Shown: one piece after another, positions 21,049-39,216 of the stretch
Position numbering within the stretch: position 1 is the first letter of the stretch
Layout of the letters: every line of letters begins with the position of its first letter
Sequence record: JN849462.1
Reading direction: 5' to 3' (one strand)
DNA length: 64,000 nt
Program-made: the position numbers and the translations under genes
The notes under the pieces: model-generated
Seen by the model: the letters and a program-made list of their open reading frames with translations, nothing else
Told to the model about the DNA's origin: nothing
Database searches by the model: none

Positions 21049-21186
21049 ATGATTGACAACATGATAAAAGACATGATCGAGTCAGAAATTGATGTTAATG
21101 ACATCGTTGATTGTCTAGTTAACCAGTACGACGTATCTCACGATGAAGCACTTGAAGCGATTCACGAGGTACTTAACGAAATGTGA
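21049..21186 (+). CDS. small acidic protein (below the ORF-track cutoff)
   Basis: 45 aa MIDNMIKDMIESE...; follows a TTGACA/TATAAT promoter and AGGAG RBS. Confidence 0.65.
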   Translation: MIDNMIKDMIESEIDVNDIVDCLVNQYDVSHDEALEAIHEVLNEM

Positions 21187-33815: not shown

Positions 33816-34091
33816 ATGAACATCAATCTGCTTATTCGCAATGAAGTGAAGAACAACACGAGTCGTTACGCTACTGCATACGACATCATGGACGATATGC
33901 TTGAGAAGTTCCCTCAAGCGCGTGCCTCTGCTGCGAAAAACGATGGAACAATGAAGAACAGCACACTGAGACGTGAAATCGCTCGTGCTCTTGATAACTC
34001 AAGCAACTGGAAAGCAATCGGCAAGACCGAGACTGGTCGTAAACTATACGAACGCTTACCTAATGGCAATTCACTAGAGAACTTTGTATGA
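33816..34091 (+). CDS. hypothetical protein
   Basis: GAGGA RBS, ATTATG start. Confidence 0.8.
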   Translation: MNINLLIRNEVKNNTSRYATAYDIMDDMLEKFPQARASAAKNDGTMKNSTLRREIARALDNSSNWKAIGKTETGRKLYERLPNGNSLENFV

Positions 34092-34714
34092 ACGCATATG
34101 ACTTAGTAAGAAAAATGCAAAAGGTTGTTAACTCTTGCGAGACAATTGAACAACTACGTAATGCAAGAAAGTATCTCATGCGCTGTCAAGACTATGCACT
34201 AGATGGTGGCAATGACAATTACATCACTACTATCATGGTAGAAGTTGATGACTTAGATGAACGCATTACCAATAAGATCGTTGAGTTGTCTGATACTCGT
34301 GGCATGAACGCTATCGAAACTGGCATTATCAAAGTCGGCATTGATATTCATGGAGTCATTGACCAATCACCAGAGTTCTTCGCGCTGTTAAGCAAACTAC
34401 CAGTTGAAGTGCATATCATCACTGGCATTAAAGAAGAACTCGACACTGATGTACCAGATGACTTAGAGTACGATCACTGGTTCTCGATCCATCAAGAGTG
34501 TGAAGATCGCGGCGTTGAAATCAAATACGACGAGAAAGGGCGCCCATGGGTTGATGATGAAATCTGGAACAACATGAAAGCTGAATACTGCCAAGAGAAC
34601 AACATCAATATCATGATCGATGACTCACCAACGTATGCTAAAACATTCGAAGGTCTTGATACTTTCTATCTACAACTAACCAATACTGTTCGTGATGAAT
34701 GGAGACGCAAATGA
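34088..34714 (+). CDS. hypothetical protein with C-terminal HAD-like domain
   Basis: GIDIHGVID...HIITG...MIDDSP. Confidence 0.7.
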   Translation: MNAYDLVRKMQKVVNSCETIEQLRNARKYLMRCQDYALDGGNDNYITTIMVEVDDLDERITNKIVELSDTRGMNAIETGIIKVGIDIHGVIDQSPEFFALLSKLPVEVHIITGIKEELDTDVPDDLEYDHWFSIHQECEDRGVEIKYDEKGRPWVDDEIWNNMKAEYCQENNINIMIDDSPTYAKTFEGLDTFYLQLTNTVRDEWRRK

Positions 34715-34896
34715 AATCATTCGGAATTATAGACCGTGAAGGCAGACATCTACTTGAACTCGATGTTGACAATGAACTAAAAGTCATGGCAATCTTCTCT
34801 GAAATTGAAGATGCTCATCGTGTGCTGTACAAATTTGGCTTTGATAAGCAAGGCTTTCGCGTAATCGAACTAAAACCACTTGAGAAGAAAGTATGA
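34711..34896 (+). CDS. hypothetical protein
   Basis: ATGA overlap chain. Confidence 0.7.
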   Translation: MKSFGIIDREGRHLLELDVDNELKVMAIFSEIEDAHRVLYKFGFDKQGFRVIELKPLEKKV

Positions 34897-35102
34897 ATGT
34901 AGCAAATGTAATGTCACAACACGCATCAATCCAATATGCGCTGATTGAATATCTCAATGCACAATACGACGGCGAAGGTCATATCGAATATGCTGAATAC
35001 TTCGAAGACATTCAAGCGTGGGAAGTTCAATACTATGATGGTGAGTTCTTACATGAGCTAACCGTTACTGCACAAGCAATTGAGCAATGGATGAACAAAT
35101 GA
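34893..35102 (+). CDS. small acidic protein, paralog 1 of 3
   Basis: ATGA overlap; similar to the next two ORFs. Confidence 0.7.
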   Translation: MNVANVMSQHASIQYALIEYLNAQYDGEGHIEYAEYFEDIQAWEVQYYDGEFLHELTVTAQAIEQWMNK

Positions 35103-35305
35103 TTGACCAAACAATGTCAGACTACAGTCGCATCATGAATGCAATCGAAGAATATTTGGACTTACGTTCTTATCAATACACTGATGTCATTCAATATGAT
35201 AAAGAACGTAAAGGCTTTGATGTCGCGATTGTTGAAGAAACTGAAAACGGATCCGAATACCTAGATGTATTCGTGCCAAACGAAAGGCTAGAAACATTCC
35301 TATGA
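35099..35305 (+). CDS. small acidic protein, paralog 2 of 3
   Basis: ATGA overlap. Confidence 0.7.
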   Translation: MIDQTMSDYSRIMNAIEEYLDLRSYQYTDVIQYDKERKGFDVAIVEETENGSEYLDVFVPNERLETFL

Positions 35306-35535
35306 ATATAAACGATGTAATGATCTCACACGAGCAAATCATGAAGTCATTGCATCGTGTCATAGAAAGTCGCACTGATAATCGCATTGTCGAAATCACT
35401 TACGATAAAGACAAAATGTATTTCATTGTGACTCTAAGCTCATCCGATGCCGTTGCTGATGAAATCTATCAATGGAACATGAAAGTCACCAACGAAACAA
35501 TAGTCAATCAAATGCACATGGAGAAGTTCAGATGA
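35302..35535 (+). CDS. small protein, paralog 3 of 3
   Basis: ATGA overlap. Confidence 0.7.
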   Translation: MNINDVMISHEQIMKSLHRVIESRTDNRIVEITYDKDKMYFIVTLSSSDAVADEIYQWNMKVTNETIVNQMHMEKFR

Positions 35536-35705
35536 AACTACCAGAATACTTGAGCCACGTTACTGTAAAAGAAAACGTAATCATAATCGACTCAGCGCGA
35601 GATAAAGCGTTGGTCGTCGATTATCTAACCAATATCAAAGCACGATTCCATATCGTCCAAAAGACGATTAGCCGCTGCGAAATCCACGTGAAGAGAACAT
35701 CATGA
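35532..35705 (+). CDS. hypothetical protein
   Basis: ATGA overlap. Confidence 0.6.
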   Translation: MKLPEYLSHVTVKENVIIIDSARDKALVVDYLTNIKARFHIVQKTISRCEIHVKRTS

Positions 35706-36031
35706 AAGAACTACTGAACACACTTAACCAAGTTGAAACTCAAATCGCTAAACAGTTCGGTCTCGACCATCTATGGCACGGACTAGTAGACTGCACTAAT
35801 AGCGTATTCGCTGCCGATAACGAAGATCTACTAAAAGCACGTGAATTCCAATACGCTGATACAGAGAAAGCAATCACAGAAGGCGACTGCTATGGCATTG
35901 AAGTATACGGCACAAGCGTATGGCTATCAACTGATGGCAAATACGTATTGACTGTAGCTGATGACGGCTGTGGCAATCGAGACTTCTATATCTTTGATGC
36001 GTCTAAACACTCAGATTGCGAAATGTACTAA
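35702..36031 (+). CDS. hypothetical protein
   Basis: ATGA overlap, 109 aa. Confidence 0.8.
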   Translation: MKELLNTLNQVETQIAKQFGLDHLWHGLVDCTNSVFAADNEDLLKAREFQYADTEKAITEGDCYGIEVYGTSVWLSTDGKYVLTVADDGCGNRDFYIFDASKHSDCEMY

Positions 36032-36041
36032 AAAGTAATAA

Positions 36042-36107
36042 AAAGGGTTGACAGATGTCAGCCCTTTCGCGTATTATACACATATCAAATCAAGAAAGGA
36101 AAACATT
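36042..36107 (+). promoter_or_regulatory. promoter/terminator cassette
   Basis: AAAGGGTTGAC-AGAT-GTCAGCCCTTT, TATTAT, AAGGA RBS. Confidence 0.8.
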
Positions 36108-36299
36108 ATGTTCATCGTAACTATGCTAGGCGCAGTAATGTTCATCATTCTATTACTCGTGCTCGTAAACGAAATGCGCCCATTCATGACAGAAGAAAAC
36201 AAAACAATGTCATTGACGTTCGGCGTAGCTATCAGCTTAATCAATCTGTTCTTTATTACAAAGTACGCAAGTCTATTCCAATTACTACTAGAGAAATAA
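36108..36299 (+). CDS. small membrane protein
   Basis: Two hydrophobic segments; start at ATTATG 36108. Confidence 0.65.
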   Translation: MFIVTMLGAVMFIILLLVLVNEMRPFMTEENKTMSLTFGVAISLINLFFITKYASLFQLLLEK

Positions 36300-36561
36300 A
36301 TCATGTCACTAACAGCTATGCTTCTGATATTACTATGCTGTGCAATACTAACTGGCATTAGTGTATTCAGCTTCATCAACAAACCAGGAATTTTTAGCTT
36401 ACTGTTCTCATTCGTATTCGGCACAGTATCTTATATCATGCTAATGGCTATCGTATGAACGCAATGCTAATGATGCAAATCTATCTCTAATGATATTCGG
36501 CATCGCGCTACTCGTGCTCGGCAATATCACTATATGGTATATTAAACGTAGAGAGAAAACT

Positions 36562-36786
36562 ATGACACAAACAACTCAAACAATCCGCGCTGTCTGTATC
36601 GACAATCAATCAACTCGTATAGACAAACCAGAACCACCTACTGGCTTGACAGTAGGCAAAGAGTATGTCGTTCACATGTATAACGTAAACGAACATATCA
36701 ACAAACCACCTATGATTCGTATCACTAATGACGACAATAAACGCGCTAGTTATGTCGCTGCACGCTTTAAACTAATCATTCAATAG
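36562..36786 (+). CDS. hypothetical protein
   Basis: GAGAG RBS; LTVGKEY motif. Confidence 0.7.
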   Translation: MTQTTQTIRAVCIDNQSTRIDKPEPPTGLTVGKEYVVHMYNVNEHINKPPMIRITNDDNKRASYVAARFKLIIQ

Positions 36787-36795
36787 GAAATCATT

Positions 36796-37335
36796 ATGAA
36801 ATTAGTCACTACTACTCGTACAAAACATTATGTAAAGAACTTCGACTACATTCGTATGAAATCAGGCGAGAAATGCCGCATCGGTCATGTCGTACGTACG
36901 TTCAGCCCTAAAACAAAAGAACCTATGTTCATCATAGAAGACCAATATTCAGGTCACACAACTCAAATCAAAAACACTATGTGGGACTATGCTATTAGCT
37001 TAAACGATGAATGGCACAAAGTACATTTCCATTGGCACGACCGTGATGTGAACGAATCAAATGTTCTAGTATACTACAAAACAAAAGAAACAGTAGATGA
37101 ACTCAGTGTAGGCGATGTGCTTCAACTACGCACACGTAGATTCAAAAATAAAGATTACCAATACAGTGATGAACTATATGACGCGACAATCGTACTAATG
37201 AATCGCCACCAACTAGTCGTAAGCGTGTCTGGCAAGTTCGTGACGTTCGACACCACAAGCTTCCAATATGATAGCTATACTGCGGATATAGACGGCAAGT
37301 TTGTTTTAGATAGTGGCTGTTCACTGCGTGCGTAA
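36796..37335 (+). CDS. hypothetical protein, paralog of 38171-38776
   Basis: Shared ELSVGD...DATIV..VSGKFVTF segment. Confidence 0.8.
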   Translation: MKLVTTTRTKHYVKNFDYIRMKSGEKCRIGHVVRTFSPKTKEPMFIIEDQYSGHTTQIKNTMWDYAISLNDEWHKVHFHWHDRDVNESNVLVYYKTKETVDELSVGDVLQLRTRRFKNKDYQYSDELYDATIVLMNRHQLVVSVSGKFVTFDTTSFQYDSYTADIDGKFVLDSGCSLRA

Positions 37336-37850
37336 AACCGCTTAGAATCGCGCTCAGAGCGTGTCAGAGCATAGTACAACATTGATTGTTTTTGAAATAA
37401 CGCACCATGCCTCGTTTAAATCAACTTGGTAAGGAAAACCGTGTAAAAAGCCATGTGGTAAGATACGGTAAGTTATTGAAATGCGTTTGGAAATACACGA
37501 TTTTAATCAGTTGAAAGACTATGCTGCAACACGTGTGTAATATAGTGAAAAATCGGTGAACCCTCATCGGCTCCTGTGTAGTAAAATGCAGTCGCGGATG
37601 GTACTCACCTTATGAAAATCTAAATCGCTTCGCATCTTTCTGCTTGACAGCCAATGCCATGTTGTGAGAGAATGAGAAGAGATTTGAACCGCCGACGGAG
37701 GTAATTGTGATTACATTGGCGTTATTTTATATGAGTCGCGACATGCAATACAGTGAGCGACCAAGTGACTTGTATCTCGGTACATGTATTTTAGACTTTG
37801 CATTAATCATTACGTTGTTCTGTGGTGTAATGATGTTCACGGGGAATTGG
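37336..37850. other. non-coding gap, candidate replication origin
   Basis: Largest intergenic gap in the window; G/C skew inverts across it. Confidence 0.55.
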
Positions 37851-37852
37851 TA

Positions 37853-38161
37853 ATGAGACGATTTAAACTTGGTAATCTCTTACGCGGTGGTTTTGCTGGT
37901 GATTTTGAGACGATAGAAGAAGCATGGGAGAAGCTTGGTTCACGCTTTCTACTGTCATTTCCGTGTGATGCATGGTCAAAAGAGCGTGGTGTTTACATCA
38001 ATGAAGACGGCGGTCGGCATGTTTACATGTATGTAAAAGAAGAGAACAAGTATGGTCAGCTTGATTGGGCTATGTGTAAAGCTGATGTGTTTTATATGAA
38101 AGACCGTGTGCCGGTTACTGCTGACGATTATGAATACTGTCGTGATGCTGAATTTTTCTAA
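37853..38161 (+). CDS. hypothetical protein
   Basis: GGGG RBS-like; start moved to ATG 37853. Confidence 0.7.
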   Translation: MRRFKLGNLLRGGFAGDFETIEEAWEKLGSRFLLSFPCDAWSKERGVYINEDGGRHVYMYVKEENKYGQLDWAMCKADVFYMKDRVPVTADDYEYCRDAEFF

Positions 38162-38170
38162 GGGTTAAAG

Positions 38171-38776
38171 ATGAAAAGAGTTGAGTTACACAAGAAAGTG
38201 GTAGACAAGCAAGCTGTTCTTCCAGATCATTCTCATGTGCAAGTTGAGACGTATTACCACACGTACAAGGGTTACATGAATTATCTAACTGGTTTGCGTG
38301 GTGTAGATGGTGATCAGTATCTGCTTGTTACAGATGATGGTCGTTTTGTTCGAGTAGAAGAGAAGCATCTAAACGGTCAAGAGCAGAAACAGCGCAAGAT
38401 CAGTGGTGGTTTAATTGATGTACGAGCGCGTTTGCAACTGCCAGCGAAAGATTGGGATTGGTATGACTGTATCTGGCGTAATGGTAAGATTGTTTACAAG
38501 TACCGCGAGACAGATTTCGTTACTGAAGAACACGAGTTAGTGGTTGGTGAGATAGTAGACATTTACGAGTCTAACGACTTTAATGGTGATTATCCGCATG
38601 ATGCTACAGTGGTGTTATCTAGACCGAAGCAAATGGTACTTGAAGCATATGGTAAACTAGTAGTGTTTACAGTGCCGAAAGAGCCATGTGGTGATAGTTT
38701 AGTCTCTGATTGTGGTGATTATCGTATTGCTGGTAATTACGCCGCGAGTGAATACGACGAAGAACTGCATTCGTAA
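38171..38776 (+). CDS. hypothetical protein, paralog of 36796-37335
   Basis: ELVVGE...DATVV..AYGKLVVF segment. Confidence 0.8.
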   Translation: MKRVELHKKVVDKQAVLPDHSHVQVETYYHTYKGYMNYLTGLRGVDGDQYLLVTDDGRFVRVEEKHLNGQEQKQRKISGGLIDVRARLQLPAKDWDWYDCIWRNGKIVYKYRETDFVTEEHELVVGEIVDIYESNDFNGDYPHDATVVLSRPKQMVLEAYGKLVVFTVPKEPCGDSLVSDCGDYRIAGNYAASEYDEELHS

Positions 38777-38783
38777 TTGAAGA

Positions 38784-38859
38784 AAAGGGTTGACGCTTGT
38801 CAGCCCTTTCTTGTATTATCTCTATATCGAAACGACATCGACTAACTAGAGAGAAAATT
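38784..38859 (+). promoter_or_regulatory. promoter/terminator cassette
   Basis: AAAGGGTTGAC-GCTT-GTCAGCCCTTT, TATTAT, ATCGAAACGA. Confidence 0.85.
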
Positions 38860-39216
38860 ATGTTTAACGCTACTACTGTTCTGAATCAACTAACTGCTTC
38901 AAACCATGGTCATTCACGTCTTGTTGCTATGACTGGTGCTAAGAATATCATGCAATCTGTAGAAAATCGTTTTGTTTCTTTCAAGTTGCCGAAAGCAGTA
39001 CGTGGTATTAACTACGTGAAAATCACTCTGACTGACGCTGATTTGTATGATATTGAGTTTGGTAAGCAATCTAGCAAAGCTTGTCCAGACATGAAAGCAA
39101 TTGGTATTAAAGTGATGATGCCGCATTACGCTCAGAAGAAAGTCGTAAATGGTGTATACAACGACATGCTAAAAGAGATTTTCGAGCAAGAAACTGGTCT
39201 TTATTTGTCACTTTAA
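38860..39216 (+). CDS. hypothetical protein
   Basis: Start at ATTATG 38860. Confidence 0.8.
   Translation: MFNATTVLNQLTASNHGHSRLVAMTGAKNIMQSVENRFVSFKLPKAVRGINYVKITLTDADLYDIEFGKQSSKACPDMKAIGIKVMMPHYAQKKVVNGVYNDMLKEIFEQETGLYLSL

Follow-up and report, generated by a model that had tools for sequence, protein, structure and literature searches.

Vibrio phage phi-pp2 (JN849462.1, 246,421 bp) is a KVP40-like, T4-related member of Schizotequatrovirus (Straboviridae). We analyzed a 64,000-nt stretch of its genome (the window; window coordinates, w, equal record coordinates minus 62000) and found that strand composition inverts sharply across an intergenic gap at w37336-37850. The gap lies between natV/dda and tk, amid hypothetical early genes, within a long early region where nearly all genes are on the + strand. 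All of the genes flanking the gap are on this strand, and no tRNAs were found in the gap. At somewhat less than an even chance, we read the gap as a conserved control region of the replication-origin type in the group of KVP40, ValKK3 and nt-1, which would be primed from a promoter and, ancestrally, assisted by host DnaA. Points in favor of this reading include that a single mechanism would cover both sides of the gap and that a module resembling oriC is present in five or six lineages.

The relatives compared were KVP40, VH1_2019, PVA8, VS2, QD01, ValKK3, R10Z, nt-1 (Mylasvirus) and K566, together with the metagenomic contigs L141, L142 and L144. The gap was aligned in nine lineages, including nt-1; K566 and L144 were compared additionally.

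Skew inversion at the gap

The inversion was measured as the difference in GC skew between the 1-kb flanks of a 500-bp gap, scanned over the whole genome. The largest flip in phi-pp2, 0.439, is at record position 99226 (w~37226); the next is 0.204, and the genome-wide standard deviation (sd) is 0.071. The sharp inversion reported in the initial annotation is thus real, and no other local strand asymmetry in the genome is as extreme. The five G and C counts per 60-nt line given there were exact on recount. The highest 1-kb GC skew of the genome (0.311, the next being 0.211) was found at w37801, and it adjoins the sole strongly negative 1-kb window among + strand genes, at w36051. Similarly, the largest flip of ValKK3 (0.499, the next being 0.293) is at the homologous gap, and the flips of phi-pp2 and ValKK3 each amount to about 6 sd. 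Read 5′ to 3′ on either strand, the flip runs from C to G, which is origin polarity. It is kept in 10/10 genomes and, for the right side, in contig L144, across genus-level divergence, and recurs in every examined relative that retains the locus, including nt-1 and K566.

The asymmetry is local, extending from the gap for about 3–5 kb leftward and 1.5–2.8 kb rightward. It had been described as fading within a few kb. This holds on the right, where the bias is gone by ~w39.2 kb; on the left it is longer than had been noted, since at third codon positions it reaches ~w34.1 kb and, faintly, 32.2 kb. Total GC skew in the left domain is negative from ~36040.

Elsewhere in the window, the minus-strand genes pp2_099 (w649-1704) and pp2_146 (w25902-26444), isolated within the + strand early region, coincide with local dips of GC skew and AT skew. 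They illustrate how ordinary skew changes in phi-pp2 track gene orientation.

Synonymous sites on the two sides

The flip is equally strong at third and at fourfold-degenerate positions. The base frequencies at fourfold sites were as follows:

Genes left of the gap: A.43, C.20, G.11, T.26
Genes right of the gap: A.24, C.07, G.22, T.46
Background: A.28, C.13, G.18, T.41
The 11 left-domain genes: A.41, C.22, G.10, T.28
All other gene classes, either strand: A.25-.32, C.09-.11, G.17-.22, T.41-.43

Composition on the coding strand is alike in minus-strand genes, plus-strand late genes and plus-strand early genes, except for the left-domain genes, in which GC skew at third codon positions (GC3) ranges per gene from -0.12 to -0.58. 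Their synonymous composition is a near-exact complement of the normal coding-strand pattern, and this is seen in all relatives. The asymmetry is of the keto/amino kind: G+T is 0.576 on the right vs 0.443 on the left, and purine content is equal. It is driven by depletion of C on the right and of G on the left, as expected if cytosine deaminates on the top strand at the right and on the bottom strand at the left.

The asymmetry tracks position, not gene ancestry, because paralogs and non-homologous genes carry the skew of their own side. Within the protein family fam2, GC3 is -0.35/-0.40 in left copies vs +0.29 to +0.38 in right copies; in phi-pp2 the left copy pp2_168 has -0.40 and its right paralog pp2_171 has +0.31. 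Genes of fam3 are G-skewed inside the right block only, and the copies 2-4 kb downstream in VS2, QD01 and nt-1 are unskewed. The lineage-specific fam21 (VH1_2019, R10Z) and fam34 (nt-1) are G-skewed when sited in the block. On contig L142, fam2 is found outside a comparable locus and its skew is not unusual.

Several other causes were considered. Amino-acid composition, raised in the initial annotation as another source of the skew, was ruled out by the flip at third and fourfold sites and by the side-dependent paralogs. Translational selection or codon optimization was also ruled out: gp23, the most highly expressed gene, has an optimal-codon pattern (fourfold T.56 and C.07; twofold C/(C+T).87) unlike that of either domain. 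Strands were not mis-called in the left domain, as its + strand open reading frames (ORFs) follow one another with overlapping stop and start codons and encode conserved proteins. Horizontal gene transfer or gene ancestry as the sole cause is weakened by the oppositely skewed paralogs and by the position-dependent skew of fam3, fam21 and fam34.

We also polarized third-position substitutions in three close clades, although the numbers were small. In the right domain the top-strand asymmetry is ongoing, with A>G at 8/53 vs T>C at 1/109 (p=0.001).

Organization of the gap

The elements of the gap and of the ORF at its right end are listed below.

37334..37378, + strand: conserved left block, AAAACCGCTTAGAAT, with TCAGAGC twice and then GTACA
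37376..37416, + strand: AT-rich tract and then GC-rich core CGCACCATGCCTCGTT (37401-37416), from AT profile and alignment
37427..37540, + strand: diverged array segment, containing GGTAAG three times; DnaA boxes in sister lineages
37541..37643, + strand: conserved spacer (~100 bp) from array to promoter, including GGTGA...TCACC
37644..37673, + strand: sigma-70-type early promoter, TTGACA, 18-nt spacer, GAGAAT and upstream TG; scan score 10/12
37707..37853, + strand: hydrophobic ORF of 48 amino acids (aa), with GTG start and Shine-Dalgarno sequence GGAGG at 37697-37701; phrog_16778, 8e-33

The gap had been taken as ~500 bp of non-coding DNA. It does exist, but only 371 bases (37336-37706) are non-coding, and the 48-aa ORF fills the rest. 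The left block is kept in all nine aligned lineages, including nt-1, and is recognizable in K566; its -10-like TAGAAT has no conserved -35 in the aligned lineages. The AT-rich tract (80-88% AT over 25 nt) lies 5′ of the core and the array, in the orientation known from Escherichia coli oriC. No other non-coding element of the locus is as conserved as the core, which is kept in phi-pp2, KVP40, VH1_2019, PVA8, VS2, QD01, ValKK3, R10Z, K566, L141 and L144. The core motif was not found in Vibrio genomes and its bacterial matches were at chance level, and a host origin of the motif was rejected. A scan of IMG/VR with the core motif returned KVP40, VH7D and one chance match.

In 8 lineages the promoter has an identical place and sequence, and nt-1 and L144 carry variants of it. 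TTGACA-N18-GAGAAT is the sole promoter conserved on either strand of the gap, and no conserved leftward sigma-70 promoter was found there in the aligned lineages. It is not embedded in a stem-loop. Downstream of it the top strand is depleted of C (14.6% vs 19.9%), and runs of three or more C occur at 0 per kb.

The 48-aa ORF is conserved in all relatives, with substitutions between lineages at third positions, and homologous ORFs of ~47 aa are present in K566 and L144. GenBank gives only its last 40 codons (pp2_169, w37731-37853), and in the annotation of KVP40 the region forms part of KVP40.0173, which is thereby extended at its N terminus. Another small ORF (w37407-37514, 35 aa) was rejected. 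It is not conserved, and the relatives have frame-breaking indels and lack a Shine-Dalgarno sequence.

Two of the motifs cited earlier as evidence for an origin were located correctly and carry no weight. The 8-bp inverted pair AGCATAGT/ACTATGCT is at 37368/37518, but such pairs are at chance level (4 pairs vs 2.3 expected; 26% of shuffles reach 4). The long imperfect hairpin GGTGA/TCACC, at 37555/37605, is well conserved in sequence, but covariation does not support it: the covariation term is +1.08, with 1 compensatory pair, and ValKK3 breaks pairs. Rfam gave no match in the gap and only a sub-threshold match on a repeated PeSL-like element outside it (see below). A conserved RNA or hairpin in the gap was rejected on the Rfam result and the missing covariation.

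DnaA boxes in sister lineages and their decay in phi-pp2

In ValKK3, R10Z, VS2, QD01 and nt-1, a ~115-bp segment between the core and the promoter contains 7-8 DnaA boxes. They read TGTGGATAA on the + strand, all in the same orientation and with ~11-bp phasing. The box offsets are 0, 12, 23, 35, 55/56, 78/79, 90/91 and 99/100, and the spacing is identical across genera, including the Mylasvirus nt-1. The array of ValKK3 is unique in its genome (7 boxes per 150 bp, compared with at most 2 elsewhere). It holds 3/5 of the perfect DnaA boxes of the genome and coincides with the largest flip. The distantly related contig L144 carries the core and three boxes, along with the same promoter and small ORF and a G-rich domain of ~2.8 kb.

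No DnaA box (TTATCCACA-like) was found within 1 mismatch in the gap of phi-pp2, and no perfect box in its whole genome. A box-for-box alignment showed that the array segment has diverged beyond recognition in phi-pp2, KVP40, VH1_2019 and PVA8, whereas its flanks are at least 90% identical. K566 also lacks consensus boxes and keeps the gap, core, promoter, ORF and flip. The three GGTAAG copies listed in the initial annotation are exactly at 37428, 37457 and 37467. Their cluster is unique in the phi-pp2 genome and non-random, only 1/300 shuffled genomes having one. From their place in the alignment, they are best read as decayed remnants of DnaA boxes, and it is only as such that they matter.

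A scan of IMG/VR with a tandem double DnaA box returned >117 mostly unrelated viral contigs and one relative only. These contigs include L114, L091, L069, L022 and others, and several have 6-7 boxes within 150 bp. Dense arrays of DnaA boxes may thus be a common feature of phage or prophage DNA.

Flanking genes and PeSL-like elements

The features on both sides of the gap are as follows.

34088..37335, + strand: left domain, 11 consecutive genes; synonymous sites A+C-rich
36043..36077, + strand: PeSL-like terminator and early promoter; repeat family from self-BLAST
36796..37335, + strand: pp2_168, left fam2 paralog, 179 aa; BLASTP to pp2_171 2e-6; phrog_32648/13976
37853..38161, + strand: pp2_170, fam3, 102 aa; G+T-skewed (skew +0.32, GC3 +0.24)
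38171..38776, + strand: pp2_171, fam2, 201 aa; G+T-skewed (skew +0.28, GC3 +0.31)
38783..38819, + strand: PeSL-like element closing the strongly skewed block on the right; repeat family, promoter scan
38797..39216, + strand: fam11 gene; asymmetry tails off (GC3 +0.20, AT skew at third positions -0.28, total skew +0.04)

The proteins of the block had no match in Pfam and matched only families of unknown function in PHROGs, and their homologs are confined to this phage group. The family of pp2_171 is small, confined to phages and unannotated, and is represented 15 times in a set of 1.84 billion proteins; its AlphaFold2 model has a pLDDT (predicted local distance difference test) of 50. The 179-aa fam2 paralog is found left of the gap in phi-pp2 and VS2. 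In KVP40, VH1_2019, PVA8, ValKK3 and R10Z an unrelated 55-aa ORF takes the place of pp2_168 (L002 4296-4463). Because of this replacement of ~350 bp, KVP40 covers only 83% of the region.

PeSL-like elements lie on both sides of the strongly skewed block, at w36043 and w38783. Each such element has a stem AAAGGGTTGAC-N4-GTCAGCCCTTT carrying a -35, a T-run and a TATTAT -10. The family has at least seven near-identical intergenic copies (w36043-36077, w38783-38819, w24292-24350, w59309-59383 and record positions 21136, 60325 and 151378), which bound small gene cassettes and are kept in relatives. In VH1_2019 and R10Z, the G-skew runs across the terminator/promoter element into fam21. Therefore, the right domain is not limited to one terminator-bounded unit.

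Candidate origin and alternative explanations

If the gap is an origin of the kind proposed, replication would start there in the following way. Host RNA polymerase would start at the conserved early promoter (w37644-37673), and the transcript, or the opening that it makes, would prime leading-strand synthesis rightward, as at the promoter-dependent origins of T4. The leftward fork would be set up afterwards. In the ancestral form (ValKK3, R10Z, VS2, QD01, nt-1 and partly L144), host DnaA would bind and oligomerize on the phased array and help to open the duplex. In phi-pp2 and KVP40, where the array has decayed, initiation would use the promoter and the core alone. With repeated firing, the top strand would more often be single-stranded on the right side and the bottom strand on the left side. 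The exposed strand would lose C (and A) by deamination, which would make the right side G+T-rich and the left side A+C-rich, so that replication rather than transcription would be the source of the asymmetry. A wider generalization is doubtful. It would have T4-related vibriophages (Schizotequatrovirus, Mylasvirus and relatives) possess a dominant early, half-oriC-like origin that recruits host DnaA, the boxes having been dropped by the KVP40 lineage and the asymmetry being the footprint of firing.

A number of observations weigh against an origin. The genomes without boxes, i.e. phi-pp2, its KVP40 relatives and K566, have the full flip. The boxes and the flip are thus separable, and the flip is conserved more widely than the boxes. 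The AT-rich tract is short, ordinary for a genome of 58% AT and without 13-mer-like repeats. Downstream of the promoter there is no enrichment of G clusters (runs of three or more G occur at 5.4/kb, the genome average), so that a classic R-loop-promoting sequence is absent. In the left domain, the polarized third positions showed no significant asymmetry of complementary rates, and there was a net gain of G (12 vs 2). The reversed composition of the left side may therefore be relaxing rather than maintained. When split by clade, the substitutions were too few to compare box-less with box-bearing lineages. The bounds of the right domain, a strong promoter at its start and terminator/promoter elements at its end, also fit transcription-associated deamination. 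The span of 1.5-5 kb is nearer in scale to transcription units or R-loops than to replichores. In addition, T4-type phages mostly use recombination-dependent initiation, which should dilute the footprint of an origin (PMC3016281).

The genome-scale skew points in the same direction. Cumulative skew, whether raw or at fourfold sites, has no minimum at the locus. The raw curve follows gene orientation, rising from 0 to ~160 kb and falling over the minus-strand block of tail-fibre genes and tRNAs, and its minimum is the record start. In the fourfold-site residuals, from which the coding-strand effect had been removed, the steepest 5-kb drop of the genome is at 95-100 kb, but it does not form a V shape. 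The cumulative minimum anticipated at 37.3-37.9 kb is thus missing at genome scale and exists only locally, the detrended minimum inside the 64-kb window being at w37283. As there is no genome-scale V, the signature of a dominant origin in the bacterial sense was not borne out. What remains of the earlier origin proposal is supported by the phased array of DnaA boxes in five relatives and by origin polarity on both sides, and not by the motifs cited for it or by dominance. As suggested in that proposal, the local signature may decay because recombination-dependent replication takes over.

The polarity on both sides suits two processes: replication that is initiated bidirectionally at the gap, and transcription that diverges from it. 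As the main alternative to an origin, the gap might be a transcriptional control region with a very strong immediate-early promoter and an ancestral DnaA operator, which would couple early expression to the replication or energy state of the host. The right domain would then be the footprint of non-template-strand deamination under very heavy transcription, and the left domain that of an undetected antisense transcript or another local process. We regard this as rather unlikely, although several observations agree with it. The conserved, consensus-like promoter is exactly at the start of the G+T-rich domain, the domain ends at terminator/promoter stem-loops, the asymmetry is of kilobase scale and the flip outlasts the loss of DnaA boxes. 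Synonymous composition follows the coding strand genome-wide, so asymmetry in phi-pp2 arises chiefly from transcription or translation, and the right domain is an exaggerated form of this normal pattern. In T4 as well, shifts of skew coincide with transcriptional divergence (PMC3016281). However, a promoter with an operator does not readily account for the reversed signature of the left genes, which are on the + strand, when the gap has no conserved leftward sigma-70 promoter, or for the skew that crosses into fam21 in VH1_2019 and R10Z. Typical DnaA operators overlap or abut the promoter, and the 7-8 phased boxes, 110-230 bp upstream of the -35, are unlike them.

The flip might also be a junction between mosaic cassettes of differing ancestry, which were joined through PeSL-type elements and kept the composition of their donors. 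The bracketing of the block by repeated stem-loops (w36043 and w38783) would suit this, and the region is plastic, as shown by the exchange of pp2_168 for the 55-aa ORF in KVP40 and by the varying copy number of fam21, fam34 and fam3; the net gain of G on the left suggests relaxation from a non-equilibrium composition. Yet fam2 members have opposite skews on the two sides and fam3 is skewed inside the block only. At least 14 left-side families (BLASTP clusters) and 5 right-side families share the signature of their side across genus-level divergence. On the left, the composition is not foreign but precisely complementary to the coding-strand pattern of the phage itself, and the right-side substitution asymmetry is ongoing, which together make mosaicism improbable. 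It is quite improbable that the array of the sister lineages is a decoy, i.e. a datA-like sink that titrates host DnaA as the phage genome multiplies and stops initiation on the host chromosome, with the skew unrelated. The array is dense, of high affinity and unique in the genome, and its dispensability in the KVP40 group and K566 would suit an accessory device for host takeover; tandem DnaA boxes are also widespread in unrelated viral contigs. However, a decoy leaves unexplained the co-located largest flip, the core, the AT-rich tract, the promoter and the box-less phi-pp2.

Some GenBank records or contigs, from several assembly projects, break inside the gap, which may reflect a pipeline convention, a coverage dip or a physical discontinuity. 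PVA8, PVA23 and PC-Liy1 are linearized at w37603 and R10Z and R11Z at w37632, the contig of TCU_VP02_YC ends at ~w37367, and V05 has a possible junction at ~w37531, inferred from the end of a BLAST match only. The gap might thus be a preferred DNA end, packaging-initiation site or break site, with the asymmetry caused by repeated end resection. This is highly improbable, because 5′-to-3′ resection would leave the bottom strand single-stranded right of the break and the top strand single-stranded left of it, opposite to the observed polarity. Moreover, the sequences are continuous across the record junctions of PVA8 and R10Z, two independent Logan assemblies span the gap unbroken, and PVA8 is a plain SOAPdenovo assembly without terminus analysis (PMC10213691). 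A break or resection hotspot was rejected on the polarity and the spanning Logan contigs.

Whether it arises from origin firing, R-loops or hidden antisense transcription, a synonymous asymmetry of a few kb that depends on position and flips inside a co-oriented gene array is unusual, and its footprint can be searched for in other phages. T4-type phages are the textbook case of replication independent of the host initiator, using R-loop origins and then recombination-dependent initiation. Prediction of their origins is difficult, and no sequence motif is common to them. A conserved oriC-like module with DnaA boxes in T4-related phages would mean that some members plug into the initiation control of the host. 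If the wider generalization were true, it would be the first DnaA-assisted origin in the T4 family, and phage origins could be found from local synonymous skew alone. If the gap were only a strong promoter with a DnaA operator, it would still be a new case of a lytic phage sensing the replication state of its host. ValKK3, nt-1 and VS2 vs KVP40, phi-pp2 and K566 offer a natural contrast with and without boxes.

Searches of the literature other than the original KVP40 genome paper, covering origins in KVP40, DnaA boxes of T4-like or lytic phages and marker-frequency work, gave no report of the locus or the array. The papers on phi-pp2, phi-Grn1/phi-St2 and PVA8 do not report them either. No early copy-number, bubble-arc or autonomous-replication data for the locus were found in this literature. 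The "DnaA box" origins predicted in other phages are Ori-Finder outputs without experiments.

Comparison with known systems

Read directly, E. coli oriC consists of AT-rich 13-mers, a GC-rich spacer GGATCGCACTGCCC and the box R1, written TGTGGATAA. The sister lineages resemble the half of oriC proximal to the duplex unwinding element, which comprises the 13-mers, R1 and an array of low-affinity boxes in one orientation: an AT-rich tract is followed by a core containing ATCGCAC, a string also present in the oriC spacer, and by an array in the TGTGGATAA orientation, with one box orientation and ~11-bp phasing, and the skew changes sign with origin polarity. This resemblance is one of layout, not evidence of homology or function. 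Unlike oriC, the locus belongs to a lytic, T4-related phage with a helicase, loader and primase of its own. It has no 13-mer repeats, no opposite second half-array and no adjacent genes of the dnaA/gidA type; its skew is local (kb) and not replichore-wide, and in phi-pp2 the boxes are gone.

At the origin oriE of T4, evenly spaced direct repeats go together with a requirement for an early-mode promoter, and forks started at T4 origins give discontinuous, origin-proximal synthesis (PMC3016281). In the sister lineages the locus similarly has evenly spaced direct repeats by a host-type early promoter; in phi-pp2 only the three GGTAAG remnants are left. In oriE, too, the repeats have no experimentally established role. 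The repeats of the sister lineages are, however, 9-mer DnaA boxes and not T4 iterons. The two loci are not syntenic, since no homolog of repEA/repEB is annotated in phi-pp2 and there is no gene 5 nearby. oriE is located at a transcriptional divergence, whereas the phi-pp2 locus is within a co-oriented gene array. As at oriF and oriG of T4, a promoter transcript could prime the leading strand in the direction of transcription, and the downstream non-template strand has a signature of single-strand exposure (depletion of C, excess of A>G). The promoters of oriF/G are MotA-dependent middle promoters, and that of phi-pp2 is of the early sigma-70 type. motA is not annotated in phi-pp2, and MotA-box geometry was not recognized in the aligned gaps, which were read without a formal motif scan. 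A downstream unwinding element like that of oriF/oriG was not identified in phi-pp2.

Tandem high-affinity DnaA boxes at a mobile or non-oriC locus, as in the sister lineages, are also known from P1-type origins and from datA/DARS of E. coli. P1 oriR and plasmid origins have boxes plus iterons for their own Rep protein, and Rep iterons are not evident at the phage locus. datA/DARS titrate or recycle DnaA and do not initiate. Finally, the stem-loops at w36043 and w38783, with a -35 and then a -10 and 7 copies in the genome, resemble the PeSL cassettes of T4-type phages. The gap differs from these in being ~10 times longer, in having its own conserved unique motifs and in placing its promoter outside a stem-loop.

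Other observations

The record of V07 (MT135025.1) is 349,331 bp long, ~100 kb above its relatives (~244-250 kb), and its fam2 protein is prefixed UNVERIFIED_ORG. This record may be concatenated or mis-assembled. Farther from the gap, w8273-14371 (pp2_117-pp2_123) contains a cluster for 7-deazaguanine/queuosine precursors with two QueF-like reductases, folE and queC, which is interrupted by a minus-strand homing endonuclease (w9914-10615). The gene content of this cluster suggests guanine modification of the phage DNA.

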